From assembly GCA_964252035.1 (NCBI GenBank), contig OZ176204.1: DNA of 64,000 nt. One strand, written 5' to 3'. The notes beneath the pieces are model-generated. The model did not search any database and was not told the origin of the DNA. It was given only the letters and a program-made list of their open reading frames with translations. Both the position numbers and the translations under genes were made by a program. Shown piece by piece: positions 4,101 to 52,867 of the stretch. Source of the stretch: Podarcis erhardii. Taxonomy: Eukaryota. The first letter of the stretch is position 1, and each line of letters opens with the position of its first letter.

Positions 4101-7100
4101 CTGATTTCTGGTAACCCACTACTGTTGGCCAGCCTCCAGGAGACTGAGGCAGCAGTGTATTTTCCAAACCATTGTAGAAATCATAGAGTTGGACAGGACT
4201 AGTAAAGCATTTGACAGAGTTTTAGGAAGTAAGTGGTAGAACTTGGCAGCGATGCTCATTTGCATCATATACAATGACTTTAGTTGGAGTGCAAGCAGAA
4301 GCTTGTTCTGCAGCAACTAATGTCCTGAATAGAATCACACTACCTACTTTCATTTGTCTGGAACCAAGATGATACCTGTTAAGAAAAGTCATATTTGATT
4401 TTGAAGTGACTGAACTGAAACGTTAATTAATGCTGCAGTTCTCTAGCCTGTATGCATATTGCGTTGGATTCTCATAAGTAGTTTTGCTATAGTTGTAAGT
4501 GGAATTTCCTAATCTGCAGTTTTTTTAGGTATCTGAATAATGGATAGTTCTAAAAAAAAGTAATATTTTGTTTGCCAAAAGAAAATAAGCAAACAGTTGG
4601 GGGGTGACTATTTTTAGTTAATTATTTAGTTAGTTATTAAAAGCATTTCTAAACTGCTCACTGTTTTAAAAAATCTCTAAACATTAAATTTTACAGTCTA
4701 TAGTCTAAATATTTTACAGCAACAAATGTTGTTATAGTATGCAATTGATCTTTATTATGGTATGTAACCTATTTCAGGTATCTGTTTCTTGTGGAATCCC
4801 TGACTTCAGATCAAGAGATGGTATCTATGCACGCCTTGCAGTAGATTTCCCAGATCTTCCTGATCCTCAAGCAATGTTTGATATTGATTACTTCAGGAAA
4901 GATCCAAGGCCATTTTTTAAGTTTGCAAAGGTGCCTTTTCTCTTTCTTGTATGAAAAACAGATACATTTAAACAACCTATAATCTTTATGTATCTAAAAC
5001 AAAGACAGTTTTCCTCAAAGCTGTTATGCCCTTACATGAGCAAAGGGGCACATTGATTATTGCACCAATATAAAATCGCAAATAATGATGTCATGCTTGC
5101 TTTGTAGTGTGTTTGAGTAATAATCAATGCTCTCTATCTCTTGTAGTGGTTCTTATTTTTATGGGATATAAAGAAACTAAAGAAGCCAAAGTTTATAGAG
5201 TAACTATCACTCTTGCTTCTCCTATTAAGAAGGCACTACTCTTTTTTTTTTTTTACTCGATACAGTAGCGATATGCTTATAACAAATAGGTGGAGTCAAA
5301 TGTGTGAGTGAACTTTAGCTTACGCAGTAGAACTTCATCTTCCTCTCCAGCCCTCCTCCTGCCTCTGGTTCCCCCTCCCCCCCAAAAAAAAAGTTTAAGA
5401 TGATCTCCTTCCCTACTCTGAATCAGATTTTGATGGTGTCTGGATGGGAAGAGGAAAGTGAAATACTTCAGTGTGGCTAAAAGTCTATTCCACTCATAGA
5501 CAGTTTTGAATACAATCAAATGTTTAAATGCCATTATGATTTATGACTTTACAATAGCATTGCATACACTGAATCTTGTTTGATGGTGGCGGGTGGGGAA
5601 AACTAATTTTCTGACAGTGTATTTATATGCCAAGCTACGGCATAAATATTTTTGGCTTAAACTTAAGGCATCCACCGAAAAAGCAATAATATTGTTTTGG
5701 AAGCTTTCCACTTTATGAACAAATTTTATTCTTTCATAAAATTAATAACATAATGAATGAAAATAGCACAAGCTAAGTTGACCAACTTGAATACATACAA
5801 TGCTAGTAAAATGTAAAATCAAAAGCTTTTTCAGTGGGTTTCAATTATATGTTATTTCACTGATGCACATGGTGCCTCGGAACATAGCTCCCACATAAAA
5901 GGGAGCTGCCTGTATACTTTTTTAAATGCAACCTATAATTCCTTTGGGGATCTTTCTGGATGTAAGATTGTGGATGCTAAATAGCTTTTCTTTTCATTCA
6001 TACCTTTTAATGATCAACAGTTGTAATGATCAACATTTTTGGGGCTTGGAAGATACACTTTTTCAGAGGAGTGGGTTGTATTAAGGTTGTGCGCATGCAG
6101 AGTACCGCTCACAAAGTTGGACTTCCCCTTTCTCTCTTCTCCCTGTGTTGCCTCAAAGTACCCTTTGAAGGCTCCTGCAGCCCTCTGGAGCAGATTTTGA
6201 GAATCCCTGGAGGTCTTCAAAGGAAAGGATAGGAGGGGGAAGTTCTGTTGCATGTGGAAGTATGCTGTGCTATCAGAACAGCAGCACTGGACATGACTCC
6301 ATATTTAAGCAGTCATAGCATGTCATATGTTCAATGGGGGGTGGCAGGAGATGGTGTATACATTTTCCCCATTTAAGTTAATGATGTATGTTAGTAGTAT
6401 TTTCTCCAAGCTGAAAGGTTAACACAAGTTACGATTAGTTTAAGAAAATGTTGGTTCTAGTAAGCAAAAGCTAATGTATGGTGGCTGATCTTTAAACAAA
6501 AACTGAAATGTGATATTAGCAAAATTTATTTTTCGCTTTTTAAAAAATTCTACAGGAAATATATCCTGGACAGTTTCAACCATCTCTCTGTCATAAATTT
6601 ATAGCTTTGATGGATAAAGAAAAAAAACTGCTTCGCAATTATACTCAGAACATAGATACACTGGAACAAGTGGCAGGAATTCAAAGGATAATCCAATGTC
6701 ATGGTTAGTCAATCTTAAATTCTATCTAGATCTCATGTTAATTTTAATGTGCGTGATAAGGGATATGTGGAATCTTTCAGCATTTTGCATCATCTGTCAC
6801 TTGGTTAGTTCCTGGAGAATATAGAATAGGATAAATGTTTTGAACTGTACATTTATGAATGCATCTGAAAAGGATTGTGCTTCCGCTCCCTGACAGTGAA
6901 TTCTATTGCAGTGCCCCCATAGATTTTCAGGATGAACAAATGAAATAAAACAACAATGGGTAGTATTCAACTAATTCATACTTGGAGTAAACCCATTGGA
7001 ATCCAAGGGTTTGCTTAGAGTGGGCCTACTCTAAGTATGACTAACTGGATATCATCCAGTGAATTTTATCAGCTAAGTGTGAACATGCAAATTAAGTCAT

Positions 7101-10100
7101 ATATGTTTGTATGTGTTCCTATTCTCAGATCAGTATGACTAGAATAAACTAGGTTGGTTAATATTTGAATCCAGACAACTGCATACATCTTTATTTGCTT
7201 TTTGGTGTGTGTATGTGTTTCAGGTTCCTTTGCAACAGCTTCTTGCCTCATCTGTAAATACAAAGTTGATTGTGAAGTTGTTCGAGGAGACATTTTCAAT
7301 CAGGTAGGAATAAAACCCTAAATATTATCAGGTACATTTAAGGCTGCATTCATAAACAGGCTTAAGGAGTAAGGCTCACTGAGCTTAACTGATCTTCTGT
7401 GCAAACATGATTAGGAATGCACTGTTAATGAACAAAAAGTATGAGTGTTAATAACTATCAGATAAAATGTTATCCTTATATCTAGAAATGTGAACTGTAG
7501 CAGTTCAAGAATTCAGTTTACATAGAAGCAGTTGTAGTTCTCCAAACAAGTGCAGTTCTTATTTATTATCATTGTTGCATGCCACTCCAATCTCCAAGCA
7601 GTGCAAGATTCCAGAGGTTCCAGATGCTTACCTAGGGGTTCAGAAAGCTAGCCTGGCTTGATTGGCTTTTAACACTTGCTGGATCCAGGGATTATAGGGG
7701 TCTGGAATCCTCTCAACCCCAAATCTCATAACACTATATTTATATTTCACCATTGCTTCAGTTGAGCTCAAAGCAGCTTGGAAAGATTCTTCAAAGTAGA
7801 ATATTTCTTGTAGGTTAGTTCAGATGTGACTCTTGACCTGTCATTCACTGGAGGACACTTTGACTTTTATTTCCCTAAGTATTTTAACTCAGCTGCCTAA
7901 GATTAGAGCTAGCAGTGTCAGAATGATTTCAGTCCACCTTCCATTTGGGAAGGGGAAGTTTCAGGGATATAATTTGTAAGCTCTAGGGGCAGAAGCAGCT
8001 TTGGGGAAAAGACTGAAGATTAGGAGGAGGGAATCTAAAGGATGGGGGTCTGGAGACAAGGTGGTTGAATCAAGGATGCATAGTGACAGTAGACTGAGAA
8101 TTGGGAGGAAAGGCTTTGTGAAACTAGGAAAGGAGGAACTAAGGCATCCCTGGAAACTACTACCCTGCAAAAATTATTATAAGCCTGCTAAGAGGCTAGT
8201 AACCTGGGTTTCCATGCTGGCTATGGAAACACATGACTCTAATGTTTAATTGATGCATCTTCATTGTATGCATCATAATCTGTTTCTGTACAATAGAGAG
8301 AGAATACATATGTGAGGCAATCCTTCACAAAAGCTGATAAATATGCAACATGTGCTGTGCTTCTCTTTGTTGGGACAGATGAGAGGAAATATTTGCAAAT
8401 TATTCATAGAATAGTTCTCTGGAAAATTGTAATCTCTAACATTTTCACAAGTTTAAAAATAATTTGTTCAGGTGCTTCATGGGGAAAAAACTGATTAAAG
8501 TATTAGTCTTCCTCTATTGAGTACAATTATTAAAGAATACAATTCATACTTGCATGTCATCATCAGTTTTGTTACACTTGGAATATTGTTTAGAAAAGCT
8601 GTGGATTATAACATCAGTCATTTTTTTATAGCAATCTGAACTTCTTAATAAATCTGTTGCAGCTAATGTTTTGACCCAGTGATTTCCTAATTGAATTTAG
8701 CTTCTATAAAACTAAAACTAATAATGCAACCTTCTGTATGCAGGTTGTTCCTAGATGTCCCAGGTGTTCACCTGATGAACCACTTGCCATCATGAAGCCG
8801 GAAATAGTGTTCTTTGGTGAAAATCTACCTGAGCAGTTTCATAGGGCCATGAAGTATGACAAAGATGAGGTTGATCTTCTCATTGTTATCGGGTCTTCAC
8901 TTAAAGTAAGACCAGTTGCATTAATTCCAAGTAAGTGTTGATTGCTCATTTCTTAGGCATATGGAGGGGAGTCTCTGTTTCAGAATAAATATATAAGGAG
9001 CTTCCATACAACTGTCATGCTGTACAGTGCTGTAATTATTGAATTTAGAGAGTTTTTTTAGATCTGGGAGGAATATAAGAGCAAGGAGTGTATTTATCTT
9101 GCATACTATTAAGTAATATTGCAGAAGCAGAATTCTAGGTCACTTTTTAGTGCATTTACAAGTAGTTCCTAAAACTTGTTGTCACATTTGTTAATAACAG
9201 TTGACATTATATTTCTGTAACATTCATTTTGTTTTATTTTTCTTAAACACGTAGGCTCTATCCCACATGAAGTGCCGCAGATTCTAATTAATAGGGAACC
9301 ATTGCCTCATCTACACTTCGACGTGGAGCTTCTTGGTGACTGTGATGTCATTATCAATGAATTATGTCATAGATTAGGTGGTGAATATACAAAACTTTGT
9401 AGCAATTCAGTCAAACTTTCAGAAATAACAGAGAAGCCTCCCAGACCTCACAAAGAATTTGAAATACATTCAGCTGAATTACCACCTACTCCTCTAAACA
9501 TTTCTGAATATTCTAGTTCACCTGAAAGAATTGCACCACAACATTCTCAGGTGGTACGTTCAGAGCAATCTTCTGAATATAAAGCAGGAAATTCTGATGC
9601 TTCCTTGGAGTCTAAAGAGAACTGTGTAGAAGAAAAATTTCAAGAAGTTCAAAACTCTTTAGAGAATGTTGAAAGTCTTTCTGACCATCTAGAAAACCCA
9701 GAACATGTGAAGGAAAATGGATCTAACCAAGAGGAAAACAAAGAGAGAAGTGAAAAAACATCTGTTGAAACACTGAGAAAATGTTGGGTTAATAGATGTG
9801 CAAAAGAGCAGATTAGCAAGCGGCTTGATGGTAAGTGCTTAAATAATTTGCAAACACCACTACATTCAAATTAAACAATACTTTCAAGGTATTAAACACA
9901 GCAATTTTGTTTTGAAGGAATTCAGTCAGTAGTGAACAACAGTTTGTAAAAATGTCCTGATCTTGCAACCAGAGATACAAACAAAAACATGTACATACAC
10001 TTCAATAAAAAAATACTTAGATTTAGGTTGGTGCAGTACAATAGGAAATCTAGAACAAATGAAAGAATTCCTCTGACTGAACCAGCTGATTACTTCCAAT

Positions 10101-12673
10101 GTTTGCAAGCTTTCAAACTACATGTAGGCAATATGAACTGAATTTATTTTGTATGCCTTCAAAAATAATGTCTGCATTTCTAATATACTTGTTTTATCTC
10201 TTTGCTTTTCTGCCTTACAAAGCTATTGTCAGACCCATATGAAATGAGATATCTATTTATAATTATATCCCACTTTGTCCCTGAAGGTGTTTAAAAAAGT
10301 GATCCTACCCATGGCTGTGGGCAAAATCCAAATTAGGATATTTGTAATAAAACAATGTAGTAATCTTTGTTTTGTTCTAAAATGCAACAAATCTAGAAAG
10401 GCAATCGGACGTGAAACACTGATAAACACTTGATTGATGAAGTTGTGCAGTGCCTTTAAGTCAACTCCCATCACCTTCATTTGGCATGACTTGGTCAAGG
10501 ATGATGGGAGCTGTAGTCCACAATAACTGGCATCACATAGGTTACCACTGGTTTCAGCAAGTAGGCTGCTCTGATCTGCCACAGGTAGGGTGACAGGGGC
10601 AGCACTATCCCTCCACCCAGCCCCAAACAGCTGTACTGGGGGAAAGCCCCCAAACAGGATGTGCCAGGGAGGGGTTGAGCCAACCAGGGATACCCTGGAT
10701 CCCAGCTTGGCCCCACTGACATCACTTAACCCTCACACTAACTCCAGGCTGGTAAGGATTATTGAGTTCAATGTGGCTTACTTCTGAAAAGACGTGTATA
10801 AGATTGTGCTGTCAAGTACATTATGGGCGATTCCAAACAATCTAAAAAGTGGCAATGGAAATGGCACTTCTGTATGTCATGTGAAGGGGAGGGGAATTTA
10901 CATATCCCCATGGATATTTCCCCCCTGCATCTCCCCACAGGAAATATGCACATCTTATGTTTCTCTTCCCCCTCTTCTTTCCCACTCCCTCATCTTTTCA
11001 CAAAATCCAGAAGCAGCAAGAGGGGGAAGGGTCAGTTCAGGTAATCCTCAAACATGATTTGCAGGATTCGCAATTACTTCTACACATTTGAGCAGCATTG
11101 TTTGCCTGTTTAGGACATTGTGACAAAATTAAGTTTTGCTTTAAGCAGAAAGGGGATCTTGAGTGGGGGGGGGGAGAGAACATGTGAGGCAAAGTCTCAC
11201 TCCTGAAAATCTAAAACAAGGTTTGAAGGATTATCTAAACCAACCCAAATTTTAAGATGCAGACTTCTGTTATTACCACTTGTTTTAAGCATCCAAAACA
11301 ACTCAATTGCTGCAAGAAAAACCTGAAAAGAATTGTGGAACTTGTTTTCCCCTCAGTTTACAAGGATTGGTGCACATGGCAGTAGTTTTCAGTGCCAAGC
11401 TATTTCTATGAAGCCATTCCTTATATGGACTATGTGAGTTTTCTCCACACCATCCAATTTCTTCTTTTTTTTGCAGTGCCATATAGAAATTGACTTGGTA
11501 TTTGTGGCAGCTTGCCTGTAGAAGTTGTAGTGTGCACACCAGCACCAAGCTTCTGGTACATGTCTGCCAGATTTGATGCATGGATATGTTTTTTGTATTA
11601 CAAATTGTATTAATATGGAACAGTATGCTTTCCTCAAGTTTAGAATGTCTAATAGCATACTGGAGATAACAATATGATTTTCTGAGTAAAACAAAACCTC
11701 ATTTAGATGCAGCATGAACAGGTTGCAGGAATATCAAGAGTTGTACAGGCCTTTTAGTGTAGCTTGCAATTGCACAGCCCATCAAAAATGGTATTTCAGT
11801 CAACTTGCTTTTAATAAGCCTTTAGGCGGTAAGCTCTGAAGCAATTGCTGTATTTCTTTGATAACAGTCATTGGCAGTCTGACATCATTGCTTATTAAGA
11901 TGTATCTTTGAGAAAAGTGAAGGGAAAGAAGTGGATTGTAGACTTCATAATTAAACCACAGAAATTAGTTACACATTCATAACTGCTTCCCTTCCCTCAA
12001 GATCTTTGGCTGTGGCCACCAGTAAATGAGAGTGGAAGGGAGCTCTTCCTTTGAGACAATATTGGAATGTGTACATTATGTGTACAGTGAGAAACTTGGA
12101 GGGGGGTGCTGAATAGTGAATGCCTTCATATGTTACTGAATCCAGTTAAGCACATAGCAGCATGTAGTAAGCCTTTAAAAAGGGATTCCATAGTCCACAA
12201 CATGTGAAATTAAAGTGTAATAAATTTTATGTATACCTATTTCCTTACTTAGAAACAGTAGTGCTTAAAATAATGACAACCCATAAGCATTAATGTATCG
12301 CATTTAGGACTTCTTGGGATTATTAATGCTGAAATAATTCTTGCTAATCAAACATGTTTCAGGTACCCAATACTTGTTTTTACCACCAAATCGCTATATT
12401 TTCCATGGTGCTGAGGTATACTCGGACTCTGAAGATGATGTCATATCCTCCAGCTCTTGTGGAAGTAGCAGCGATAGTGGGTCCTGTCATAGTCCAAGCT
12501 TAGACATAGAAGACGAGAGTGAAATTGAAGAGTTCTATAACGGTATAGAAGAAGATACTCCTGACAGAGAAGAGGAGAATGGATATGGAGAAGATGGAAT
12601 TGAGCTTCAGGAATCTGAGTCTGTGTCGGTAAACGAAGCTGTAGGATTTGACCATTCGACAGACAAACTATAA
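626..12673 (+). CDS. SIRT1: NAD-dependent deacetylase sirtuin-1, complete spliced CDS (793 aa)
   Basis: Exons: 626-1193, 2021-2137, 3176-3417, 4778-4930, 6556-6703, 7224-7303, 8744-8930, 9255-9830, 12363-12673. They total 2382 nt, all introns are GT-AG and phases are compatible. Sirtuin motifs present: [22 protein letters not shown], catalytic QCH, Zn cysteines CLIC/CPRC, GSSLKV. Confidence 0.98.
998..1027 (+). repeat. Coding (CCG)9-CCA repeat encoding Pro10 in SIRT1
   Basis: In frame with the ATG at 626. Confidence 0.9.
2021..2137 (+). CDS. SIRT1: SIRT1 exon 2
   Basis: [39 protein letters not shown]; tttcag| ... G|gtagat; 117 nt. Confidence 0.96.
3176..3417 (+). CDS. SIRT1: SIRT1 exon 3
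   Basis: [16 protein letters not shown]...PPKRKKRKD...IIVLTGAG; ttgcag| ... |gtatgt; 242 nt. Confidence 0.97.
4778..4930 (+). CDS. SIRT1: SIRT1 exon 4
   Basis: [51 protein letters not shown]; 153 nt. Confidence 0.97.
6556..6703 (+). CDS. SIRT1: SIRT1 exon 5 (catalytic His)
   Basis: [49 protein letters not shown]; ctacag| ... |gttagt; 148 nt. Not in the ORF track; translated by hand. Confidence 0.97.
7224..7303 (+). CDS. SIRT1: SIRT1 exon 6
   Basis: [27 protein letters not shown]; tttcag| ... |gtagga; 80 nt. Confidence 0.96.
8744..8930 (+). CDS. SIRT1: SIRT1 exon 7
   Basis: [62 protein letters not shown]; 187 nt. Confidence 0.97.
9255..9830 (+). CDS. SIRT1: SIRT1 exon 8
   Basis: [30 protein letters not shown]...KEQISKRLD; cgtag| ... 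G|gtaagt; 576 nt. Confidence 0.96.
12363..12673 (+). CDS. SIRT1: SIRT1 exon 9 coding part (C-terminal regulatory segment)
   Basis: [26 protein letters not shown]...STDKL*; stop TAA at 12671-12673. Confidence 0.96.
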
Positions 12674-14400
12674 AGTAATTACTGACTGGTTTCAGGAACT
12701 TTCCCACCAGCATTAGCAGTTTTGGCATGTTGGAATGAATGTGTACTGAATTTAGAGCAAGGAAAATATAAGGATGTAGTGTTTATAAGCAACTAGAATA
12801 GATTTTCATGCATAGTTTTCTAACTTTTCCAATTAAATTCTATAAAGGCACACTCAACACTAATCTTTTTGAATTTTGAAGGTACTAAGTATCTTTTTAC
12901 TGTCACTCATTCATTTTTATTAAGTTTAATCTGTGTGAGCTGTGTGTGTGTACATATACAGTATTTTTGCTTAACAAATTTCAACCTTTTTTTGTTTTTT
13001 GAACCGTTTTGAAAAAGCCATTGGAATATTAATATAATATAAAGGGAACAGCTAATCTAGACCAAAGAATGGTATTTTCACGCCTCTTGCTTTGTAACAC
13101 TTTGATTTATTTAAAGTCTCCTCCCCCCCCCAGCTCTGTTACTGCATAATCTGTTTAACACTGGTATTTCCCCAAAAGTTAGTATGGCAGCTATGTTTCT
13201 TAACATTAGTCTTCATGTTGAAATGCATGTGAGCATATTGAAATTAGGCATCATAGTGAATACCTGGAAATCCCTGACTACTTTGATTATTAGAAAGTGC
13301 TACTGCAAAACAAAAAACTTCCTGTGGATATGTAATAGTGCCAATTGGCTTGCAAAATTATAGCAAAATGGTGTTCAGTTAAGTAGAAGCTCATTAAACT
13401 TTTTTGTGACACACAAAGGGTAGGTGGAACAGGAAGTCAGTATACAAAGCTAGCACTTAATGTATAAAATCTTTTGTGAATGCTGCCAAAATGTGAATAT
13501 GTAAATGTACTGAAGGTGTGTATATAATATTCAGGATATGGGAGCAGTCTCCAAAAGAGCTTCTGTACCCGACACAAACCCTTAAAAGGAGAAACTTAAA
13601 ATTCCAATATAAAACAGAAAGTTCAGTTTAAGCATAAATTTAAAATATGCTGTTTGAGGACCGGCTTCTGTTTTGGATAACTTAATACCACGTGTTGGTA
13701 CTGAATTATACAAAAAGCAGCTACAGAAATTGGTCACAACGCTGCTTCTTCAAGGCTGCCTTTTAAAAGTGGATGTCACACATACTTCCAGCTGCAGATT
13801 GTTTCCATCTTCCACAATGTGTTTCCTCACCCTGTATTTAATAGTAAGTTTTATGTTTATTTGTGAAACCACTTTTCAGCCGTATCCCAAGAGAGCTCTG
13901 CCAGTTATTGATCATTCATTCATGTACATTGCTTTAATATTTATTCCATTTTGAAATATGTAAAGTGGTTGTCCTTTTTAAGCAATTAATACATCTGTTC
14001 CGTAACAATAGCATAAAAAAGTGTTAAGAATGGCCTTCTGTGTTCATCTGAAAAACATTGGCATGTTTTCTCATGGTCCAGGTTCTAAATAGCAGAACTT
14101 GCTAGACTACACTAAAGAATGCAATATGTTTAGCTTTGCTTGCATGTCAAAATGTATTTGTGCTATAGGAGATATTTTAAAATGAAAATATTTTGTTTTT
14201 AAATTATTTTTACAGTGTGGATTATTTTATGCTTTTATATTGTATATAGTGTCTTTTATGTAACCAACTGGCAAATGTTTTGTAGAAGACTGTTTTAAAA
14301 TGACCTGGCTCTCTTCCTGCAACTTTTGAAATACAAAACCAGTGTTTTATACTCGTATAGTCTGTTTTAAGGTCTATTAAATTGTCGTTTAAATTTTGGT
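12674..14400 (+). other. SIRT1 3' UTR with a cluster of miRNA seed matches
   Basis: AU-rich. Seed matches at 12705-12742, 13015-13068, 13158-13192 and 14288-14294. Confidence 0.75.
14376..14381 (+). terminator. SIRT1 polyadenylation signal (ATTAAA)
   Basis: gtctATTAAAttgtc at the end of the conserved-looking UTR, followed by T/GT-rich sequence. Confidence 0.6.
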
Positions 14401-16646: not shown

Positions 16647-16949
16647 TATTACGTTTTCATATATGTTGGAAGTTGCCCAGAGCGGCTGGGGCATAGCTTC
16701 CCTTTTTTTTGCGGGAAATTCCCTTATTCCAGCGCTGCTTTCCCCTGCTATCCTGGAATGTTAGATATCCTGTAGACTGTCCCCGGCACAGGTGAGGCTG
16801 CTGATCCCTTATTTTCAAATCTGAAAGTTGACAGCTATGTGCTGGGGCAGCCCAGTAAGATGTATGGGGTATAAACAGTAAAATTATCATTATGCAGTGG
16901 GACGACCCTATTGTCATCAGAGAACTGTTGGCAGGTATGGGGTGATGGG

Positions 16950-17700
16950 AGTTGTGCTCTTCACGATGGGGGGAGCCCCAAGCTGGCGAAAACTTGGCGG
17001 GGGGGGGGGAGAGATCCATGAATGACCCACAGCCCTGAGCCTGCGGGCGCGCGGCCCCGCTTGGGGTCGCCCGCTGCCCCTCCCTCTGGTGGGAGTGGCC
17101 GCCTGCCGTGAGCGCCGGCGACAGCTGCAGGACTGCCTGACCTTGCTCCGCCGTCGGATCCCCGCATCTCCGCCATGGCGACCAGGCTGCTGCTCCTCCG
17201 GCTCTTCCCGCGAGCTGTGCGGGCCACGGCGCCCGCCTCCATCCGAGCCATGAGCGCCGGGGGTGCGTACAGGCAGACCAGGGGCGGCGGCGGCGGGGCT
17301 GAGCGCGTTCTGCTGGGCTTGCGAGAGCGCGCTCCGGGGGAGCGAGGGGCTGCTTTTGCCTGGCGCTCGCAGACCTCGGCAAGGTGACCTCAGCTCAAAC
17401 CAAAGCGCGGCACTCGTCCAGGAGGCGCCTCCTCGGGGTTATGAGGACGTGCTGGGCGCTCGAGGGCCCGTCCCCCCGGGGCGCTCCTACCTGCTTTTCC
17501 GCCAAAAAACCAAAGCCCACCCCCCACCCCGGGCGTATGGCAGGCAAGAGCCGCCCCTGGCACAAGGCCCCTTTGCGTCCCTCTTCTTGGAGGGAATCAC
17601 GTGCCCTGTGGGGAAGACACGTGGAACAGCCCCCCATAAATGGCCTTTGAAGGGAGGCAGGCAATAGTCTGTTTGCAGAGCTGCACGTGAGTTCTGGGGG
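16950..17700 (+). promoter_or_regulatory. COX5B-like CpG island (promoter, exon 1, start of intron 1)
   Basis: Sharp GC/CpG enrichment. ERR-type TGACCTTG at 17138-17145. CACGTG at 17598, 17618 and 17684. Confidence 0.7.
17175..17262 (+). CDS. COX5B: COX5B-like exon 1 (mitochondrial targeting peptide)
   Basis: Strong Kozak context ccgccATGg. Arg-rich presequence with no acidic residues and an R-3-type IRAM|S site. Donor GGGG|gtgcgt, phase 1. Confidence 0.85.
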
Positions 17701-20700
17701 AGGGAATCACCATTGGCGTCCAGCGGGCTAATGATTAATAATTATGATCTAAACTTGACAATTACCCAAAGCAAAAGGGTTGTTTGTTTTCTGCTGAGGT
17801 TCTGTTGTAACTCTCGTTTGACCTGTGGGTGGAAGCCAAAGGTTCCGAAATGCCCCCTTCTCACCACAATTCTGCCACCCAGCCCCCTTCCTTGGTTAAC
17901 TCTGCTGGTGTCCAGGGGATATGGAGTAATTTAGGAGTATGCTTTCCTACCACCCCACTTAGGTAAAGGTAAAGGGACCCCTGACCATTAGGTCCAGTCG
18001 TGGCCGACTCTGGGGTTGCGGCGCTCATCTCGCTTTATTCGCTGAGGGAGCTGGCATACAACTTCCAGATCATGTGGCCAGCATGAAGCTAAGCCGCTTC
18101 TGGCGAACCAGAGCAGTGCATGGAAACACCATTTACTTTCCCACTGGAGCAGTACCTATTTATCTACTTGCACTTTGATGTGCTTTCAAACTGCTAGGTT
18201 GGCAGCAGCAGGGACCGAGCAACGGGAGCTCACCCCATCACGGGGATTCAAACCGCCGACCTTCTGATCAGCAAGTCCTAGGCTCTGTGGTTTAACCCAT
18301 AGCACCACCAGCGTCCCACCACCCCACTTACCAAATTGCAAACATCATGTCCCTGAACAGAGCCTGAAGGCAATAGCCCAGTAACTGGGATTCAATGGAA
18401 TACTTTCTCTGAATCTAGAAGTGCCATATCACCATAGATCACAGAATCAGGATTGTAGAGTTAGAAGGGACAACGTAGTCCAACCTGCTGCAATGCAGGA
18501 AATCTTTGCCCAAGGTGGGGCTCGAACCAATGACCCTGAGATTAAGATTTGCATGCTCTACCGATTAAACTATAATGTATTTTGTAAGGACATTGTGGTA
18601 CTCAGAGTTTTCATTTCAGTCCATTTCGTTATCATCTGAAGCTGTCTTATTCACTGCAACGTACTGTTAATTTCATTGAGCTCTCTGCCATGACCCCCAG
18701 GTTCCCAATTAGACCCTGCTAGATCCCATCTGATCAGTGTACTTAGTAGGGGTGGTGGTAAAGAATATGTAGTGCATCCAAAAATATCACCTTCAAACCA
18801 GTATGATTTAGAGGTGCTTAATTTTATCAGGATTGTTTTGTTCTCCACATCTTCCTGGGGTTCATTTAGTTGGGTCAACATTTAATATTAAATTGCTACA
18901 TCCTCCAAGGGCCCATGAAGCTCAGATTTTGGAAATTAAAACAAATTTTCAATTTGCCTGAAGCCAAAACAGAAAAGACTGGGAAATACACAGGACAGCT
19001 GAGTTTGGTGGCACCTTCAAGAGAAGTGGTATACTCAGTAGGTGGGAATCTGCATGGAATTCTATTTTCACACTCTTTTTCATTAATATCTCAGTACACC
19101 TTGTCAAACCATAACGCAGGTGCCCTAAAGTGGGGATTCTGTAAAGCAGGAATAGACAACATGGTGCCTTCCGGTTGTTTTCAACTACAACTACCATAAT
19201 CCCTTATCATTGGCAATGCCGCATGGGGCTCTTGGGAATTATAGTCCAAAGTATCTGGAGGGCATCAGGTTGGCTGTCCTTGATTTAATGTGTGAATTAC
19301 AGGGTTTTTAAAGACTTTTTTTTCCCAGCCAGTGGCCTGGGAAGCATAGTACCTGCTCAGCAGTTAAGGCTAGATATACAGTATCTAAGCATGCAAACAG
19401 GTGGGTAAAAGAAGAGTTGGAAACTATGACAGCAGCAGATTCCAGCTTGGTGCTAGAATTTTTCCTACAGCAGTTATTAAGAGGAAGAGGCACTGATGGC
19501 AGGGATTTTGCTCATATAGAATCCTCTCACACATGGCCTGTTAGCTACCCAGAGGCGGGGGGGCATACCTAGTGATTGGATAGGTTGGCTCAGAGTGGCT
19601 GGGAGCCTGCCAATCCTCAGGCCACTCCTCCACTGCTCTGGGTGGCTGGGTGAGATGTGCAGGCTCCTCTTGGTGCCAGGATGAAGAACTCAGATTGCTG
19701 CAGCCCTGAGGGCCCCCCTCCCCAGTTGGCTGGCAGCGCTATTAGAAGTGTGAGTAGGGCGCCCAGCAGGACTCAGAGGAACAAAACACAGGGAGAGGGC
19801 AAGAGTGGAATGGAGGCAGAAGGGAAAGAGGAAGAAGTCAGGGAGATGGACTAATGGAGATGGTGGGGAGGCAGAGCAGAGCAGAGCAGACTCAACCCCA
19901 GTGTATGTGGAGGAAGTCACTGGCTGAGTGCAAAAGGCAATGAAAAGCAACCATTTTGAGTTTCTGGTCCATGGTCTCTCCCAACTTTGGTGTTGCCAAA
20001 ACAGCTCCTTGCCAACAGCGCAAGGGACAGGGGAGGCAGCAGACTGATGTCTCTCCTTGCTGTAGACACAAGGGAGCCTAGTTATGCCTCTGTCCAAAGG
20101 TACAGTGGTACCTCTGGGTGCGGACACAATCCATTCCGGGGTGCCGTTCGCACCCCGAGCAGTCTGCAACCAGAGCGGTGCTTCTACACATGTGCGAAGC
20201 GCAATAGAGCGCTTCTGCGCATGTGCGAATGTTTCTGCACATATGCGAACTGCGCAGAACACTTCTGCGTGTGCGGAGAAACCCGGAAGTAAATACTTCC
20301 GGGTTTGTTGCGTTCTTAACCCGAAAAAACACAACATGAAGCGTTCACAAGAAGAGGTATGACTGTAGTTGTTATCATCAATGCCAACAAAGCAGAATGT
20401 AGAATGACAGAGAGAGAATCTGGATCAGAGCATAAAGAAAGATGGCAATTACAAAAGAAAGAGCTAGCTGCAATTGTTATGAAGGCCTGAGATTTGCGTA
20501 CTTAAGCCCATGCTGACCCTACGCTTAACAGTTGATTTAAATGGGTTTAAGTTTGCATATCAGTGCATAGTGTCAGATAGGTAATCAAATCTGGGGGTTT
20601 CCATTGTTCTTTTCAGGTATCCCTACAGATGAAGAGCAAGCTACTGGGCTTGAAATGAAAAGTATGCAAGCCTTGAAGAGAGGGGAAGTAAGTTTAAAGC

Positions 20701-22344
20701 AATTGAAGAGTTTCACTGAAATATGATTTTGTTTGGTTTCACACTCTTGACTAATAACTATCACTGTCAGTGGAAGATTTAAAAAAGAAATTTAACATCT
20801 AACCCAACCCATCTCCCATTGCTTTTTTTGACTACTCCATTGGCTGTGGTCTCATCATGCACTGTGACTTAGAGGTCTCAAGTCTTTACAGGCCCTGTAG
20901 ATTTTTCTCAGCATCACTTAATTTACACATCAAACTGAATTTAAAAGCAATTAAATTCATGCAGATGAACTATGGTTGGAGTGGAATACAGCCTTAAACT
21001 CTTACTTCAGTCACCCAAGATTTATAACTTTTTTTCTTTTCCACTGTATTCTAGTTCTTTAAAAATCAACCCTTGGTCATTCAGTAAAGGAAAAACATGG
21101 CAGGAGGGGATATATAACAACTGTGCTGCTAACTAACACATTTCTTCTTTATAAAGGATCCATACAACATCTTGAAGCCCAAGAAATATCCAGGAACCAG
21201 AGAAGAGCCTCATATTGTTCCATCAATTGGGGACAAGAGACTAGTGGGTTGTATCTGTAGGTATCAGAATTTGTTTGACTTCAGTACATACTGTCTTCCT
21301 GATTCTCATATTGCATAGTCTTGTAAAACCTATTAAGCTCCAGACATTTCAGGTGCAATCCCGTCCCACCACGGTGAAGCAATCGTCTTTTGATTCAAAC
21401 AGTAGAGCCTTTCCCCTTCAACATATCCCTCAGTGCATGCATGCACTCAAAGTGGGATAATTATAGAGGCAGCATGCTCAGACTTCCCATTCCCCGTCCT
21501 GGGCTGCCTGTGTGCATGCACAAGGGGAAGAAGCCACTGGACCCAAGGGGAGTTGAGGAGGGTAAGAGTGGGTGCAAGTATTTCATCCATATCTTACAAA
21601 TTACCTACAGCGAAATTTATGTTGTAATAGTGTTGATTTTTAACAGTGGTTTCTAGTTGAGTTGGGTGTGAGTGCTTTAAGAAATTTTGAAAATACTGTA
21701 TAGGCATACTTATTGACCCTGTTACAAATGGAGCGGCATGTAAAATATGCAAAGCCTGAGTCTTTGGTAGAAGATGCATACTATATTAAGATACAAGCAT
21801 GGCATTTTCTATGATTCTTGCTTTGAAACACCAAGGAGCTATTGGCTCTTTCCCAGGTTGTTTTCTCTTTCTGGCCTTGTTTTCTTGTCCGACACCAACA
21901 GTCAGCAGGGTGACAAGGTTAAACATTTCCTGCCAATTCTCCCCCACATTCATGCATTTGGGAGTCTCTTTCCCAGAGTCCCTGTGTAGTTATGTCCTAT
22001 GACAACTACACAAAAGATGCAGCAACATGCAAAACTACTTTCCACTGATATGGTAGGAAAGATGCCATAACCAACTTCAAAAATAGACCAAATTCAAAGG
22101 CTGCTCTTCTGTTATTCTAGGGAACCAAAACTGTTGTCAAATGTAACTGGCCCTTCTCTAAAGACCTTGAAGCTTTCTAAAATGTGGGTTCTTAATTAAC
22201 AGATACTGGAATTTTTTATTTCTTTTTGCAGGTGAGGAAGATAACTCCACTATTATTTGGTTCTGGGTACACAAAGGAGACAGCCACCGTTGCCCTCAGT
22301 GTGGGTCTTACTACAAGCTAACTCATTATGAACTCCCCCACTGA
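17175..22344 (+). CDS. COX5B: Cytochrome c oxidase subunit 5B family paralogue (COX5B-like), complete spliced CDS (123 aa)
   Basis: Exons: 17175-17262, 20617-20687, 21157-21256, 22232-22344 (372 nt, GT-AG). Product: [123 protein letters not shown]. It has the [11 protein letters not shown] motif and four Zn ligands (GCIC, RCPQC). The symbol indicates family, not orthology. Confidence 0.93.
17962..18317 (-). mobile_element. Full-length Sauria SINE, antisense in COX5B-like intron 1
   Basis: The reverse complement begins GGGACGC..GGTGGTGCT and ends GGTCCCTTTACCTTTACC. 13-bp TSD accaccccactta at 17949-17961 and 18318-18330. Confidence 0.88.
18432..18572 (-). mobile_element. Short SINE with tRNA-Lys(CTT)-like head and CR1-type tail
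   Basis: Minus strand reads ggtagagcatgcaaatcttaatctcagggtcattggttcgagccccacc, then cccttctaactctacaatcctgattctgtg. Confidence 0.7.
19147..19282. mobile_element. Short degenerate hAT-type MITE (related copies at about 10490-10560, 34467-34551 and 42270-42397)
   Basis: Shared actacaactcccat / gatgggagttgtagtcc core with cagg...cctg-like ends; TSD eroded. Confidence 0.45.
20103..20365. mobile_element. Tc1/mariner MITE, family B, in COX5B-like intron 1
   Basis: TA|CAGTGGTACCTC ... GAGGTATGACTG|TA. Internal 13-bp inverted repeat aaacccggaagta/tacttccgggttt. Confidence 0.75.
20617..20687 (+). CDS. COX5B: COX5B-like exon 2
   Basis: [24 protein letters not shown]; ttttcag| ... |gtaagt; 71 nt. Confidence 0.93.
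21157..21256 (+). CDS. COX5B: COX5B-like exon 3
   Basis: [33 protein letters not shown]; ataaag| ... T|gtaggt; 100 nt. Confidence 0.93.
22232..22344 (+). CDS. COX5B: COX5B-like exon 4 coding part
   Basis: [37 protein letters not shown]; tttgcag|; 113 nt including TGA. Confidence 0.93.
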
Positions 22345-22398
22345 GAACTGATACCAAGAAAAGGTGTTTTTTTCTTTCTTTCTTTCATTGTAGACTTA

Positions 22399-22404
22399 AA
22401 TAAA
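22399..22404 (+). terminator. COX5B-like polyadenylation signal (AATAAA)
   Basis: Canonical AATAAA about 55 nt after the stop codon. Confidence 0.65.
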
Positions 22405-22728
22405 TCTGCCTGCCTTTAGCTGCATCAACCTTAGTTACTTTATTGCACCTGCATCTAAAAGCTGAAACAGAAATACAATACAAGAGCTCTGAACAGTATC
22501 CCTTTTTTTGGGATCAAAGCAGCCAAAGTAGGTCTGGTTTGGATTATGGCTGCAGCTGTGCTGTTTTTTCTATTTTTAAAATCACTCCCACCCTCCTATA
22601 GCTGCTATTTACCCCATTAGAGGAAACATACAGGTGTCTATATGCTGGTGGATGAGGTACAATTAGGACCTTGATAGCAATGCATGCACCCTCATTGCTC
22701 ATAATCTACCACCTCAAGTGTAATAACA

Positions 22729-22759
22729 GCATGTGTGTGTGTGTGCGCGCGCACACACA

Positions 22760-22794
<35 letters not shown>
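22729..22794. repeat. Compound (TG)/(CG)/(CA) microsatellite
   Basis: About 65 bp of unbroken purine-pyrimidine alternation, with a 24-bp perfect palindrome at 22737-22760. Confidence 0.9.
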
Positions 22795-22868: not shown

Positions 22869-23742
22869 CCGTATTTTTCGCCCCATAGGACACACTTTTT
22901 CCCCTCCAAAAATGAAGGGGAAATGTGTGTGCGTCCTATGGGGCGAATGCAGGCTTTCGCTGAAGCCTGGAGAGCGAGAGGCATCGGTGCGCACCAACCC
23001 CTCTCGCTCTCCAGGCTTCAGGAAGCTATCCGCAAGCCTTGCAAGCTCGGCGGGAGTTCCCGCAGGCTCACAAGGCTTGCGGGCAGCAGCCTGCAGCTCC
23101 GGCGAGTGTCCACAAGCCTTGCGCGCCCGGCAGGTGGTACTGCCGAGCGCACGAGGCTTGGGGCAGCAGCCTGCCGCCCGAAGCACGGGGAGCCCTCCGG
23201 AGGGCTCCCCGTGCTTCGGGCGAGTGTCCGCAAGCCTTGCGCGCCCGGTGGGAGGTCCTGCCGGGCGCGCAAGGCTTGGGGCGGCAGCCTGCAGCCTGAA
23301 GCACGTGGAGCCCTCCGGAGGGTGCCCCGTGCTTCGGGGAGGTGTGCACAAGGCTTGGGGCGGCAGCCGCGGCTGGGGGGGGGAATAAATTTTTTTTATT
23401 CATTTCCCCCCCCAAAAAAAAAACGCAAGCTCCGGGGACAGCTGGGAGGCGCAGCGCGTCTTCCCGCTGTCCCCGGACCTGGTCTGCAGGTGGGCGGCAG
23501 GGAGAAGAGCGCTTCTCCCCGCTGCCAGCCCCGCAAGCTCCGGGGACAGCTGGGAGGCGCAGCGCGTCTTCCCGCTGTCCCCGGACCTGGTCTGAAGGCG
23601 GGCGGCGGGGAGAAGAGCGCTTCTCCCCGCTGCCGGCCTCACAAGCGCCTGGGGGGGAAATAATTTTTTCCCCCTTTATTTCCCCCCCAAAAAACTTGGT
23701 GCATCCTATGGGCCGGTGCGTCCTATGGGGCGAAAAATACGG
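22869..23742. mobile_element. 874-bp TA-flanked non-autonomous DNA transposon (Tc2/pogo-like TIR) filled with GC-rich hairpins
   Basis: TA|CCGTATTTTTCGCCCCATAGGAC ... GTCCTATGGGGCGAAAAATACGG|TA; 23-bp perfect TIR; no transposase ORF. Confidence 0.85.
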
Positions 23743-24043
23743 TACCTCAACAAGTTATTTGTGAACTACAAAAATGGAGATGATCCAAACTGCAACCAAC
23801 AGAATGGTAGAAGAACCTAGCTTCACATGGCATGCTTGGTCAAAGTAACAGACGTCTAGGCTGAGCATTATTACAATGTAACACATGGTTATCGAACAAA
23901 CATCTGCATCTGCAAGGGAAGTAGTGATATGTTGGAAACTTAGTAGAAAGGAAAGACAACTTACTTAGCAAGGTATATGCAAGGAAGAACTCATTCATTG
24001 TAACAAGTAACTTGGGTAACTGCTTTTCCCACTTCCATTATAA

Positions 24044-25852: not shown

Positions 25853-26061
25853 TTATACTAAATTGAAACCTTCATTGTGATCAATAGCTTGGATCAGCTT
25901 AGATCTGAGTATTTCTTTATCTGTATATTTTGGAAGATCAAGAAGATTAAAACATGTGTGAGACACTGGGAGATACTCATCACCACCTCCAGTCGGCTGA
26001 ATGACAAGACTAAGGCTCTTCATCCCAAGAATAGGAATACGATCACTGCCTGTCAAAAATA
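25853..26061 (-). CDS. HERC4: HERC4 last coding exon (catalytic Cys)
   Basis: [17 protein letters not shown]...[16 protein letters not shown]...HNEGFNLV*; 209 nt. Confidence 0.96.
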
Positions 26062-29000
26062 CTACCAAGAAAATATAAATAAGTAAGAAGCCTGGGTACA
26101 AAGGCCAAAAATGTAGTGCTGTGCTATAATTTTCATTTTACTTTTTAGACTGATATAGCCCAAATCTAAAATTCTGAAAATGTAAGGCAGTTATAGCCAT
26201 ATGAAATTGTTTATAGTTCATTGTTTTTGCTTAAAGTTATTGTAAACAAATTTTATAGTTTAGAGAACTTATTTATTATATTTGTTCATTGCTTCACCCA
26301 GAGGTTCTTTGGGGGAACAATATAACTAAAAACAGAAACTCCATATAACACCCCCCGAGTCCAACCCTAAAAAACAAGTGTGGTGTGAAGTGATTTAATT
26401 AAGTTAACATTTTCTCTTGGCTAAAGAAATAATTATTTGCTTGGAAACAGGTGTGCTTACACCTAAAGCAAGGTTTTCAACCTTTAATGAATCATATCAA
26501 ATCAAGCAGAGCAGCTGCATGAGTGCTTTCAACTGGTATGATATGTTTCACCAGAAACAGCTGCAGTTAAACTATTCATATATGTGCCTGTATGCATGTT
26601 AGGGTGCTCACACATTCAAAACTCAGGGCAGAATCCAGACTTAAGTTAACTTAGGTCCTACTGAAATCAATGAAGTGAGCCAAGTCATGATGCATGTTGT
26701 GCTTCATTCCCATTGAAACCAGGCAAAAAAAGTCTGGATCCAACATTTGAAACATAAGTGAATAAGCAACTTGCAGACCTAATCCTAGTAATTGTTGTTT
26801 ATTTCTGTTAAAAATATTCATTTTTTAAAAAAGTGAAAATGCAAATTCTCCCTTGGACAGAATCCAAAGTCAACTTAGCATTTTAACCATTCAAAAAAAC
26901 CAAACCCAACACTAACGCTTGGGCTTAGCACGACATGTAAACCAGGTCTACACTGTAGTTTAGCATTACGTGCATGAACAGCACTGAGCCTCATGCTCAC
27001 ATTCATAGGTGCCAACTCCCTGGGGCCCTGGGTGCTTGAGCACCCACAAAATTCCCATGAAGGGGGCAGGCACCCACAAATTTTGGTGCCAGGGCCAAGC
27101 TGGCACTCCTGCCTGCATTTTCCCCTAACCTCCAGTCCTGAAGTGATTAGAAGAAACTGCTGCTGCCGCTCTTAAACTGAAGTTCTTACTTCCAAATTTG
27201 GGGACAGATTACACTATAACTTGATAACAAGACAGGATCATAAACTGCATATTGATCCTGGCTTGTCTGAACACGCCACAGCTAAACTAACCACAGTTCC
27301 AAGTTTGGATGTAGGTTGTTTAAAACCATAGGTAGATCCTTCCGATAGCCGGCTATGCTGAAGGAAGCTCCACAGGCCCGAGGCTCACTGCTGCTTAGCA
27401 TATAGTGCTAAATTATGACCTAGTGTTACATGAAAAATAAGCCAGTGGTAACAATTGCTCTAGAGTTCCTATTTAGATTTCTTATTTTCTTACACAGTTT
27501 TGTATACTTACATAAAAACTGTTTCTTCTTCTCCAGTGGTAACTCATGAAAAACTTCCCAGAACATTTTAATTGTTGGATTCTCTGCCCAATATTCTCCT
27601 TTGTATTGAGTATTCTAAGAACAACAAATCAAAATCACAATATATCCCCCTCAAATTTACAAATAAAATGTTGTATATTGAACAAACAAAAATACCTATG
27701 CGTAAACGTATTTATAGAATTTTATGTATTTTAGTGTTTTTCTACATAATACAGAAAAGCTCTATTTTGGACAATCGCTTAATTATACAGGATTCTTTAG
27801 TGTTCAGTTGTTGCTAATGTCTGGACTAGTAACATACCTTCTCTAGTTCTTTCCAATCATAGTTTGTATTCCCAATCACCATTGCTTGCAGTTCGTTGGG
27901 CTGGAAGAGCTGCAGAACTTTACCTCCACACACCTTGTGAAAGCCTGCATGGAATGCGTCATAGAGAGGAGCCACAGATTTATTGAAGATGTAGTCCACG
28001 TAGGCATTCACAAACTCTTGCCTAAAGAGCAAATGAGAAGAAAAGGCACCATGTTTTCAGAAGATGAGAATGTTCAACCAAAACTCCACTAGCAATGAAC
28101 AGCAACCATTTTAACCCTGTCAACAATTATCTTCAGATAGCTCCTAGTTAAGAACTATAACATGAATGTCACAATGAATCCAGCATACAAGGCAAAGAGG
28201 GGAGGCATGAGAAAGGAACAGGCAAGTTTGACACTAATTTCTGACTTCTTAAGCTATGGTTTATGAAGCCAGGAAAGATAATTCAAATGCTGCCAATGTC
28301 TTGGTGGCTGCAGTAAGGAACCACCAAGAAGAGCAGCGGAAGGAGGGCAAAACTCATTTCTTAAAATATTTTGCCTGTTTATCACCACCACAACAAAGAA
28401 AGAAAAAGAGAAAGAGAAAGAGAAAGAGAAAGAGAAATTTCTTTTGCAAGATTACAGGTTTGGAATAAATATCTCAGAAGTTGGGTGTAACTCCCCACCA
28501 CACCCACACCCCTTATAGTTCAATTCTGAGTTAAGAACCTGCATGACATGAAAAAAGTATTTCTCACTGATAAAATTGCAAAGGCAAACTATTCTGTCAA
28601 CCTACCATGCTAAAACTTACCTATTTTGTTTGACGACAGGAATATCAGTACCATTAGGAATTAGCTCCTTAACTTCCGTGGTACCAAAATTTTCAACAGT
28701 GATCTGTTTAGAACATGAGCGTGTATTTTACTTTTTGTTGCAGAATAGAATCTATAATTCAATACAGGAAAGCGAAGCATGCTATACAAAGCCTAGCATT
28801 TTAACAGGAAAAGAGAGACTCGATTACATATTATTACTCCTTACACTGGCATTAAAAAAGTGGCAATGGATGATCTCACACTTACTGTAAAGTTGAGGCA
28901 GAAGGTATCCTCTATATCATCTTCTGGGTAGTCCAATAATTGCTGCATACTCCTGAGAATAAAATGTCTCTCATCGCAAGTTGTAACAGCACAATTTATT

Positions 29001-50185: not shown

Positions 50186-52867
50186 GTTGCCAGCCCTCTC
50201 AATGATCTGCCAGCTTCAGCATTCAAACGTCCAGCATCACTGTAATGGAGTGGGAAATAAGTTAGTACTAGAATACAGGGGACTTGGTATTTATAATAGG
50301 ATTCACAAATTTCATCTCTCAATTATTGTCATTAGCCCAAATAAAAACACTAAGAATTTCACGTCTCATTAGAAGAACTCTATAGCAGAAAAATGTAAAT
50401 GTGACTGTTACATGTTCTCTAAAATATTAATCATCTAATTTTAAATAAGTATTTTGCTAGAGCTAGTATTTTTGGACCTCTCAATATCAGAATTGCAAAC
50501 ATTTATTGCAGGCCAAATGTGGTTGTTATGTGTTACTCCTACAAGCGAGTAAGATGCAAAAAGGCATAACCAGAACTATTTATGAAACCAGTAATGACAG
50601 CAGGATAGAAAGCACCACAATGGCAAATCTGAAAGGATTTTTTTGTGCAAGACAAATTTTTGTGCTGACTACAAATTCAGCATGGAGATTAAATTTTCTG
50701 GATATTTGAGACTTGGAATAGAACAGTTCTCTCTTCCCCACTATTTTTACACATTTTCTCCCATGTCTTTACATTTAAGTCAACCCCTAAGATTATATTT
50801 AGCCCAATCCTAAGCATGTTTTACTTGATAAGTAGATCCCACTGAGTTCCATGAGCGCTTTAGACTGAAAACCGCAAGATAGTTAACAAAATCCAGCCAC
50901 ACTTACAAGACACTCAAGATGGTGCTGCCAAGAGCTGGAACATACTTGTAAAAAAGTGGCCTTCAGACATCCATGCCAATCACGGCAAATTCAACCTGTT
51001 ATAAGAACATAATTAGGTAAAAGTTATGGGAATTCACATTTCTCCAAACCCAATCACATATTTTTCCCCCACTTGAATATCACTGAAAATAGAATTTAAA
51101 GAGAGCCCTTAGCTGAAAAAGCATGGTAAATCTTCGCTTCCTCCAGTAACAACCATTCAGGCCGTACAACTGGCGGGGGGGGGGGTTAGTGGTGGTTCCC
51201 CATATGTGGAATACCCTTCCCCAGTTAGGTATGCCTGTCTTCTTCATTATTAAAATGCAAGAGGAAGTGAAAAACATTCCTGTCCACCCAGGCATATAGT
51301 GGCTGAAAGAAACAGTTCTTGGCAACCCTGAAATCATTAGAAATGAGGCTATTTGACTGGCTTTAACTTTTTTTAGATCTTCTAATTGTTTTTAAATGTT
51401 TTGAAACACGTCTTTCAATTTTCATTATATTGTTTTATTGCTTGGTTAATTGCTGCCTTGAGCACCTTTCAAAGAAACAGCAGGAGTGAAATTTAATAAA
51501 CAACAAAAATAATAATTAGATTAAAATGTGCTAGAAAATATATATCACCCTTCTTCAGAAAAAATAAAAGGGCTTATTCTACTTTCAGTGCAATGAAACA
51601 GGCACACAGCAACACAAGGTTACTCAAGCAGATCCAGAGTGTTTTCTATATAGCTCTCAGCACGCTTATGCATATTTCTATGATTTATTTTCACCATTTC
51701 TTTTAAACAACTTAGATCCTAGATATCTGAAAGGCAGCTTCTATCCATACTCATCTTCTCAGGTGTTAAGATGTGCAGAGGGAGCTCTCTTGGTAGCTCT
51801 GCCATGCTTAGAAGTGTGAGAAGTGGCAGCTTGGGAGATGGCTTACTCTGTGGTGGCCCCTAAATTATGGACTTCCTTCCCATAGGGGTGCATCTAGGGT
51901 CTTCACTATACAGCTTTCACCATATGCTGAAGAAGACACTCCTCTTTGTGCTCACCTTTGATAGTTAAGTTCTTTTGCTGAATTTATACTGTTCCATTTC
52001 ATAGGATTTGGCATAAAACAATAGGAATCGACATAAAACAATAATGATGAGGCTAAACAACCAGATCAATATTTCTGAACACTAGATACAAGGAAGTCTT
52101 TATCATCCACTAGAATGAACACTATAATGGCAATATCAAGCCAATTTATTCTCTCACTAATTCAGGGGCTGTGCTGTCCTGCCATGCCATATAGTTGTAT
52201 AAACATTTTTATTATTAGAAGATTAAAAAGCAAAAATTCCTGAATTAGAAAAGGTGCAGGTGCGTAATACGACAAAGCTTTACTGTATTTCTTTCTATTT
52301 AGGTGAATAATGGTTTGTTTTAGTCATACACCCAATAACTCTGAAAAGATTTACTGTATGAACCTAGAGCTTTCCAGAAGCACCTACAGTATGAATCATT
52401 GTTGCTACATCACTTATTCGAAGCACAGTAATGCTGTGGATGAACACTAGCAATATCTAAATCTCCAGATGTCTAAAGACCAGGGGCTTATCCACATCTT
52501 TTGCCCCACTCTTTCTGCACTTTGCCCAGAAGCAAATTGGCAGATCTCTAAGCACAGATATTACATGCTGACAAGGCGTCACTACTGTCAGCAATCAGGC
52601 TGTAGCATTCTGTACTAACTTCAGCTTCCCGATTTCAAGCATGAGGGAAGACCCACATAGAGCACATTGATATGGATGGTAAACTTACACACAAGAGCTA
52701 CTTTCTGTCAACTCTGGATGAAAAACAGTGCAAAGCCAAGTTCCAAAATGGTTTTTTAAAAAAAGGACCACAACTTCCGTTTTCAAACTATTCCACCTTC
52801 CAAAACATATCTCCTTTATGCCTACCTCCATTAAGCTCACAACTTAATGTAGCAGGGAGTTAATGTA

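Follow-up and report, generated by a model that had tools for sequence, protein, structure and literature searches.

Among the respiratory complexes, complex IV is the one best known for subunit isoforms specific to tissues or conditions (PMC5448071). For its subunit 5B, the fish genes COX5b1 and COX5b2 are named as recognised paralogues in a passage of PMC4398389 that cites Little et al. 2010. In mammal-based work on tetrapods, subunit 5B is treated as single-copy. The extra copy is said to have been treated as a teleost feature, reportedly in the abstract of that 2010 study (Physiol Genomics 42:76). Second subunit-5B genes also exist outside vertebrates, as Drosophila COX5BL and Arabidopsis COX5b-1 and COX5b-2; these are taken as unrelated, lineage-specific duplications with no shared synteny, and they indicate that subunit 5B tolerates isoforms. 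Here, we describe a second gene of this family, COX5B2, in a 64,000-nt stretch of contig OZ176204.1 of the lizard Podarcis erhardii (the window, to whose first letter positions refer). The gene lies between SIRT1 and HERC4. It is very probably the lizard member of an ancient vertebrate COX5B paralogue, the cox5b2 of fish, which has kept its place in the SIRT1-HERC4 interval since before cartilaginous and bony vertebrates diverged, coexists with a canonical COX5B located beside a presumed ACTR1B, and is predicted to provide an alternative isoform of complex IV.

The coding part of exon 1 (17175-17262, on the + strand like the rest of the gene) aligns to the bovine COX5B precursor and contains the start codon, the predicted presequence and the first residues of the mature protein. 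It is followed by exon 2 (20617-20687, 71 nt), by exon 3 (21157-21256, 100 nt), which includes Cys85 and the first nucleotide of the codon for Cys87, and by the coding part of exon 4 (22232-22344, 113 nt), which carries the rest of Cys87, Cys107, Cys110, His118 and the TGA stop. All three introns are of the GT..AG type, with phases 1, 0, and 1, and the spliced open reading frame (ORF) of 372 nt encodes 123 aa before the TGA. A single exon combination reproduced this protein in an independent exact-match splicer, in agreement with the four exons and intron phases proposed in an earlier inspection of the letters alone (hereafter the sequence-only reading). No runs of N occur in the window. The start codon has a strong context (ccgccATGG, with G at -3 and G at +4), although calling it a perfect Kozak sequence, as had been done, was slightly generous given the t at -6. 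The gene also has the CpG island of its own that had been ascribed to it, covering the promoter region at 16960-17600 with a GC content of 0.71 and an observed/expected CpG ratio of 0.77, versus 0.41 and 0.32 for the whole window. The 5′ untranslated region (UTR) extends at least over 17098-17174, starting from the first position of an RNA contig, and the 3′ UTR spans 22345-22418, with the expected AATAAA at 22400-22405.

The predicted protein matches the Pfam COX5B family (PF01215) with an E value of 3e-26 and a score of 92 bits, against a cut-off of 31, over residues 27-117 (profile positions 26-118 of 129). Among solved structures, its best match is the bovine complex IV subunit Vb precursor (E = 7.7e-47), and the human and mouse subunit 5B structures are also strong matches, with the zinc cysteines conserved. 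Cys85 and Cys87 (GCICEED) and Cys107 and Cys110 (RCPQCG) align with the conserved zinc-binding cysteines of the bovine protein, so that all four cysteines listed in the sequence-only reading were recovered. Residues 1-26 have a high content of Arg, Leu, and Ala and no acidic residue, and they can be aligned to the bovine presequence as far as the mature N terminus. From this alignment we infer an N-terminal mitochondrial presequence, as had been put forward before, and the mature protein is predicted to start at around S27. Segments at about residues 41-53, 60-67, and 117-123 diverge from the bovine sequence, which bears out the clear difference from mammalian COX5B noted earlier. Canonical COX5B of human and bovine (PDB 2Y69 chain F and 5Z62 chain F) resembles COX5B2 in Pfam family, type of predicted presequence, Cys4 motif, and intron positions, but differs from it in locus, which is beside ACTR1B, and in clade; no COX5B2 orthologue was found in mammals by protein searches.

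Expression was assessed with assembled RNA contigs, rather than raw reads, from four runs belonging to four studies, which were placed on positions 16900-22600. The joints between exons 2 and 3 (20687>21157) and between exons 3 and 4 (21256>22232) were present in all four runs. The joint between exons 1 and 2 (17261/2>20616/7, GT..AG) was found in two of the four (X6 and X9), in each case within a contig that covers the whole coding sequence (CDS). The X6 contig, 477 nt long, starts at 17098, passes through the four exons, and stops at 22372. A contig from run X1 ends at 22418, 13 nt past the AATAAA. Contig starts at 17098, 17133, and 17170 lie within the CpG island. Word depth was in the hundreds over the exons and between 0 and 12 over the introns, an exon/intron ratio of roughly 40-100×. 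Transcription of COX5B2 thus starts from a CpG-island promoter of its own, and the four exons are spliced into an mRNA that is polyadenylated downstream of the AATAAA. The reservation attached to the sequence-only reading, that the gene might be neither transcribed nor spliced, is countered by these contigs from four studies of a closely related lizard, which join the predicted exons.

The same genomes also carry a canonical COX5B (COX5B1). In Lacerta agilis, this is a separate gene of four exons with the same phases, encoding 132 aa and located on a different chromosome from the COX5B2 copy, and two COX5B genes are likewise present in Zootoca, Podarcis, Elgaria, and Varanus. The canonical gene of L. 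agilis is arranged tail-to-tail with a 376-aa actin-family gene, which is taken to be ACTR1B, and the same layout was found in gecko and turtle. In human, the gene order is COX5B, ACTR1B, ZAP70 (PMC9352006), and a published list of genes around SIRT1 includes CTNNA3, DNAJC12, HERC4, and MYPN, COX5B not being among them (PMC6901563). Given the actin-family neighbor in lizards and the human COX5B-ACTR1B pair, the copy orthologous to mammalian COX5B is the canonical one and not the window gene, which sits between SIRT1 and HERC4 rather than beside ACTR1B. The possibility, left open in the sequence-only reading, that the window holds the sole COX5B of the genome and the orthologue of the mammalian gene was thereby removed. 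The window protein shares 64% identity with the lizard's own canonical COX5B. The last coding exon measures 110 nt in amniote canonical COX5B (three loci) and 113 nt in COX5B2 and in Xenopus laevis COX5B, suggesting that one C-terminal codon was lost, at the DNA level, in the sauropsid canonical genes examined. No link between COX5B1 and ACTR1B was found in anamniotes: the X. laevis gene has no other gene within 10 kb, and tblastn with the actin-family exons gave no match at X. laevis COX5B or at the second COX5B locus of Callorhinchus.

We also considered whether the 132-aa COX5B is a squamate-wide retrogene, and rejected this since, in both L. agilis and gecko, the gene is split into four exons and stands beside the actin-family gene. 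A retrocopy does occur in Podarcis lilfordi, where a processed copy of canonical COX5B (OX395132.1), next to a Med30-domain gene, is the source of the protein annotated as "COX5B, mitochondrial". At 9919-10557 of the locus examined there, the four exons are joined exactly and are accompanied by a 5′ UTR, a 3′ UTR with AATAAA, a tail of 11 A, and an intact 132-aa ORF, the whole being bounded by a perfect 16-bp target-site duplication (9919-9934 and 10542-10557). Among the annotated canonical copies examined in lacertids and gecko, only that of P. lilfordi is a retrocopy.

The surroundings of COX5B2 were then compared across vertebrates. In the chimaera Callorhinchus milii, a 748-aa SIR2 gene (+), a COX5B gene (+), and a 1054-aa RCC1/HERC gene (-) follow each other in the order and orientation of the window, and the second COX5B of this species is at a different locus. 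The same arrangement of a SIR2 gene (+), COX5B (+), and an RCC1/HERC gene (-) is found in three Podarcis genomes. In Elgaria, a 1060-aa RCC1-repeat (HERC4-type) gene lies downstream on the opposite strand, and in Chrysemys the COX5B-like gene lies inside the annotated span of a 1057-aa RCC1 gene, also on the opposite strand. Downstream of cox5b2 in the teleost Parambassis ranga, a 1045-aa RCC1 gene lies on the opposite strand, and the upstream neighbors are genes other than SIRT1; this cox5b2 is therefore like the window gene in its tail-to-tail HERC4-type neighbor but unlike it in its upstream neighbor. Two COX5B copies were found in Callorhinchus, Polypterus, Amia, teleosts, frogs, caecilians, turtles, and squamates.

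A phylogenetic analysis based on 128 alignment columns, without distant outgroups, placed the window gene in a branch with 95/97 support together with the "like" copies of squamates, turtles, frogs, and caecilians, teleost cox5b2 including that of zebrafish, shark sequences, the SIRT1-locus copy of Callorhinchus, and sequences from lungfish and lamprey. Amniote canonical COX5B formed a branch of its own (99/90). Position 118 is His in 28 of the 32 COX5B2 sequences and Pro in 35 of the 45 others, and internal exons of 71 and 100 nt are common to all 12 multi-exon COX5B genes solved, which include both paralogue types; the second Callorhinchus copy is outside this set, the exact-match splicer having given no solution for it. 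Teleost cox5b2, for instance that of zebrafish, shares with the window gene not only the clade and His118 but also four exons, internal exons of 71 and 100 nt, a last coding exon of 113 nt, and phases 1, 0, and 1; what sets the window copy apart is its presence in a tetrapod. Together, synteny and phylogeny imply that COX5B was duplicated before cartilaginous and bony vertebrates diverged, and an origin of COX5B2 in the early vertebrate genome duplications is plausible.

To evaluate selection, orthologous CDSs were extracted from the fetched loci and compared pairwise. The ratio of nonsynonymous to synonymous substitution rates (dN/dS) of the window gene was 0.29-0.33 against Elgaria COX5B2 and 0.18-0.23 against Chrysemys COX5B2, while canonical COX5B pairs gave 0.12-0.19. 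COX5B2 is under purifying selection that is somewhat weaker than that on the canonical gene; a dN/dS comparison had been suggested with the sequence-only reading. With three introns at ancestral positions, an intact ORF, a dN/dS below 1, and spliced RNA contigs, the gene is neither a retrocopy nor a pseudogene, as had been claimed from its structure.

The distribution of COX5B2 was examined by querying a large set of proteins with the lizard sequence and, separately, its turtle orthologue, the best 120 matches being considered each time. COX5B2-type proteins were returned from squamates, turtles, frogs, caecilians, lungfish, and ray-finned and cartilaginous fish. For birds and crocodilians, both searches returned only canonical COX5B, with lower scores, and no mammalian protein was among the top 120 of either. 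Mammalian proteins came only from a search with canonical COX5B, and the six that were sampled fall in the canonical group of the tree. This pattern is consistent with independent losses of COX5B2 in mammals and in archosaurs. The view that the locus is an old paralogue which lizards have retained and mammals lack is therefore upheld by the tree, the synteny, and the separate canonical COX5B, the mammalian part being based on annotated proteomes.

Given its predicted presequence, its zinc-binding fold, and its high identity to the solved subunit, COX5B2 would most likely act through mitochondrial import, cleavage, and incorporation into complex IV. The N-terminal presequence would direct the import of the 123-aa precursor, whose cleavage would leave a mature protein of about 97 aa. 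The latter is predicted to bind zinc through its four cysteines and could then take the matrix-side position of subunit 5B in complex IV as an alternative to COX5B1, possibly with the tissue- or condition-specific role envisaged in the sequence-only reading.

Several points weigh against this account of an ancient, functional paralogue, some of which concern its origin. When invertebrate outgroups were added, the COX5B2 clade was recovered with lower support (88/96) and the amniote canonical genes were drawn to the root; the placement of the root among these fast-evolving genes is probably long-branch attraction, and we claim no rooted order of duplication. Moreover, two constrained topologies were not rejected by the approximately unbiased (AU) test, one uniting the reptile copies and mammalian COX5B (p = 0.10) and the other placing all amniote sequences in one clade (p = 0.19). 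The sequence signal being this weak, the case for an ancient origin rests on synteny. The first of these AU results would be compatible with orthology between the window gene, translocated beside SIRT1, and mammalian COX5B, with the other lizard copy being derived, as would the exon structure common to all COX5B genes. This history is nonetheless highly improbable, since the other lizard gene has four exons and stands beside the 376-aa actin-family gene in Lacerta, gecko, and turtle, matching the human COX5B-ACTR1B pair, since the SIRT1-HERC4 position is already present in Callorhinchus, and since the free tree splits the two groups by starred branches. The second AU result, from an alignment that is short, would equally suit a DNA-level duplicate specific to reptiles or tetrapods that landed near HERC4 by chance. 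For this to hold, COX5B copies would have had to enter the same interval separately in chimaera, teleost, turtle, and squamates, each time in the same orientation to the HERC4-type gene, and the duplicate copies seen from Callorhinchus, Polypterus, and Amia through teleosts, frogs, and caecilians to turtles and squamates argue against it as well; we regard it as very unlikely indeed.

The remaining points concern expression, distribution, and role. The RNA comes from a closely related lizard species and not from that of the window: the contigs carry A>C at 20655 (Met43Leu), which is the Podarcis state, and intron contigs differ from the window by about 4%. The RNA runs carry no tissue labels, the absence from mammals and archosaurs was read from annotated proteomes rather than from genome searches, and the evidence on COX5B2 as a whole is at the level of DNA, RNA contigs, and sequence comparison. 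Finally, the higher dN/dS of COX5B2 relative to the canonical gene could reflect relaxed constraint and not specialisation. A ratio of about 0.3 within squamates, some twice that of the canonical gene, and the apparent dispensability of COX5B2 in mammals and archosaurs are what would be expected of a duplicate that is transcribed but redundant and slowly decaying, with no distinct contribution to complex IV. This seems improbable to us, as every lineage sampled has kept an intact ORF, splice sites, zinc cysteines, and predicted presequence since the cartilaginous/bony split, dN/dS is well under 1, and spliced mRNA contigs are deep. COX5B2 might also be a specialised complex IV isoform of ectothermic vertebrates, tuned for example to variable temperature or oxygen. 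Its apparent independent losses in mammals and archosaurs would then track the evolution of endothermy with a constantly high aerobic metabolism, and its linkage to SIRT1, conserved since the ancestor shared with cartilaginous fish, would reflect common regulation of a sirtuin and a respiratory-chain subunit within one regulatory domain. We consider this scenario unlikely. A regulatory or functional link between COX5B2 and SIRT1 is speculation, and the Parambassis gene, which lacks the SIRT1 adjacency, indicates that the gene can persist without SIRT1 close by. The ancient paralogue with a predicted role as an alternative subunit 5B is the interpretation that we retain.

The gene itself is already present in RefSeq. 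The window protein is identical to XP_033004837.1 of L. agilis and 98% identical to the Podarcis model, both with the same neighbors, and the "COX5B, mitochondrial-like" models of reptiles and amphibians (e.g., XP_033004837.1 and XP_028585251.1) do not differ structurally from the window gene. These models are, however, automatic annotations under a generic name, in which orthology to fish cox5b2 is not recorded. A full-text literature search found no paper on tetrapod COX5B2, nor one treating COX5B together with HERC4 in a context of synteny, and searches with alternative names for COX5B2 found only plant, insect, and unrelated uses. What is new is the identification of the gene as tetrapod COX5B2 and the conserved SIRT1-COX5B2-HERC4 order; its practical novelty is limited, since the gene is already among the predictions of annotation pipelines. 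The second 5B gene of fish is also retained in squamates, turtles, and amphibians, so that the extra fish copy very probably represents an ancient vertebrate paralogue and not a fish-only duplicate, and the lineages that seem to have lost it are mammals, birds, and crocodilians. For comparative physiologists, COX5B2 is a candidate for complex IV isoform switching in ectotherms, and expression or proteomic studies of reptiles and amphibians should tell the two COX5B genes apart.

The flanking genes were identified from their domain-coding exons, which agreed with the position between SIRT1 (+) and HERC4 (-) assigned in the sequence-only reading. The part of SIRT1 examined spans 4709-12692 on the + strand, from the first SIR2-domain exon found to the approximate end of the CDS, and SIR2 (PF02146) matches fall on the exons at 4709-4951, 6544-6705, and 8675-8938. 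HERC4 (25856-50215, - strand) is tail-to-tail with COX5B2, with the HECT C terminus at 25856-26137 and RCC1 repeats at 46855-47337 and 49889-50215, the latter being the first RCC1 exon; its Podarcis orthologue is annotated as a 1060-aa RCC1 protein. Projection of the Podarcis annotation by alignment placed the SIRT1 stop at ~12.7 kb (CDS end at ~12692) and the HERC4 stop at ~25.85 kb, and COX5B2 therefore lies in the middle of a 13-kb tail-to-tail interval.

Various repeats were also observed in and around these genes. In intron 1 of COX5B2, a dispersed repeat of the short interspersed element (SINE) type at 17957-18320 lies outside the gene product and stood out by its RNA-contig depth, with a summed word depth of 30,000-130,000 and many unrelated flanking sequences; we presume that it resembles Sauria SINE. 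Further repeat-like stretches were seen in the same intron at ~18420-18560 and ~20100-20340. Between the 3′ ends of COX5B2 and HERC4, a (CA)21 microsatellite is present at 22752-22794, followed by a GC-rich block at 22869-23743. This block contains two tandem arrays, with periods of ~118 nt (23101-23357) and ~108 nt (23424-23654) and about two copies each, and it has no alignable counterpart in the orthologous Podarcis interval, although the rest of that interval is 95-98% identical. Within a HERC4 intron, the segment at 42435-42698 gave tblastn matches on both strands to ORF fragments from an intron of the L. agilis actin-family (ACTR1B-like) gene, which suggests that the palindromic element at this site is one member of a dispersed repeat family also represented at other places in lacertid genomes.

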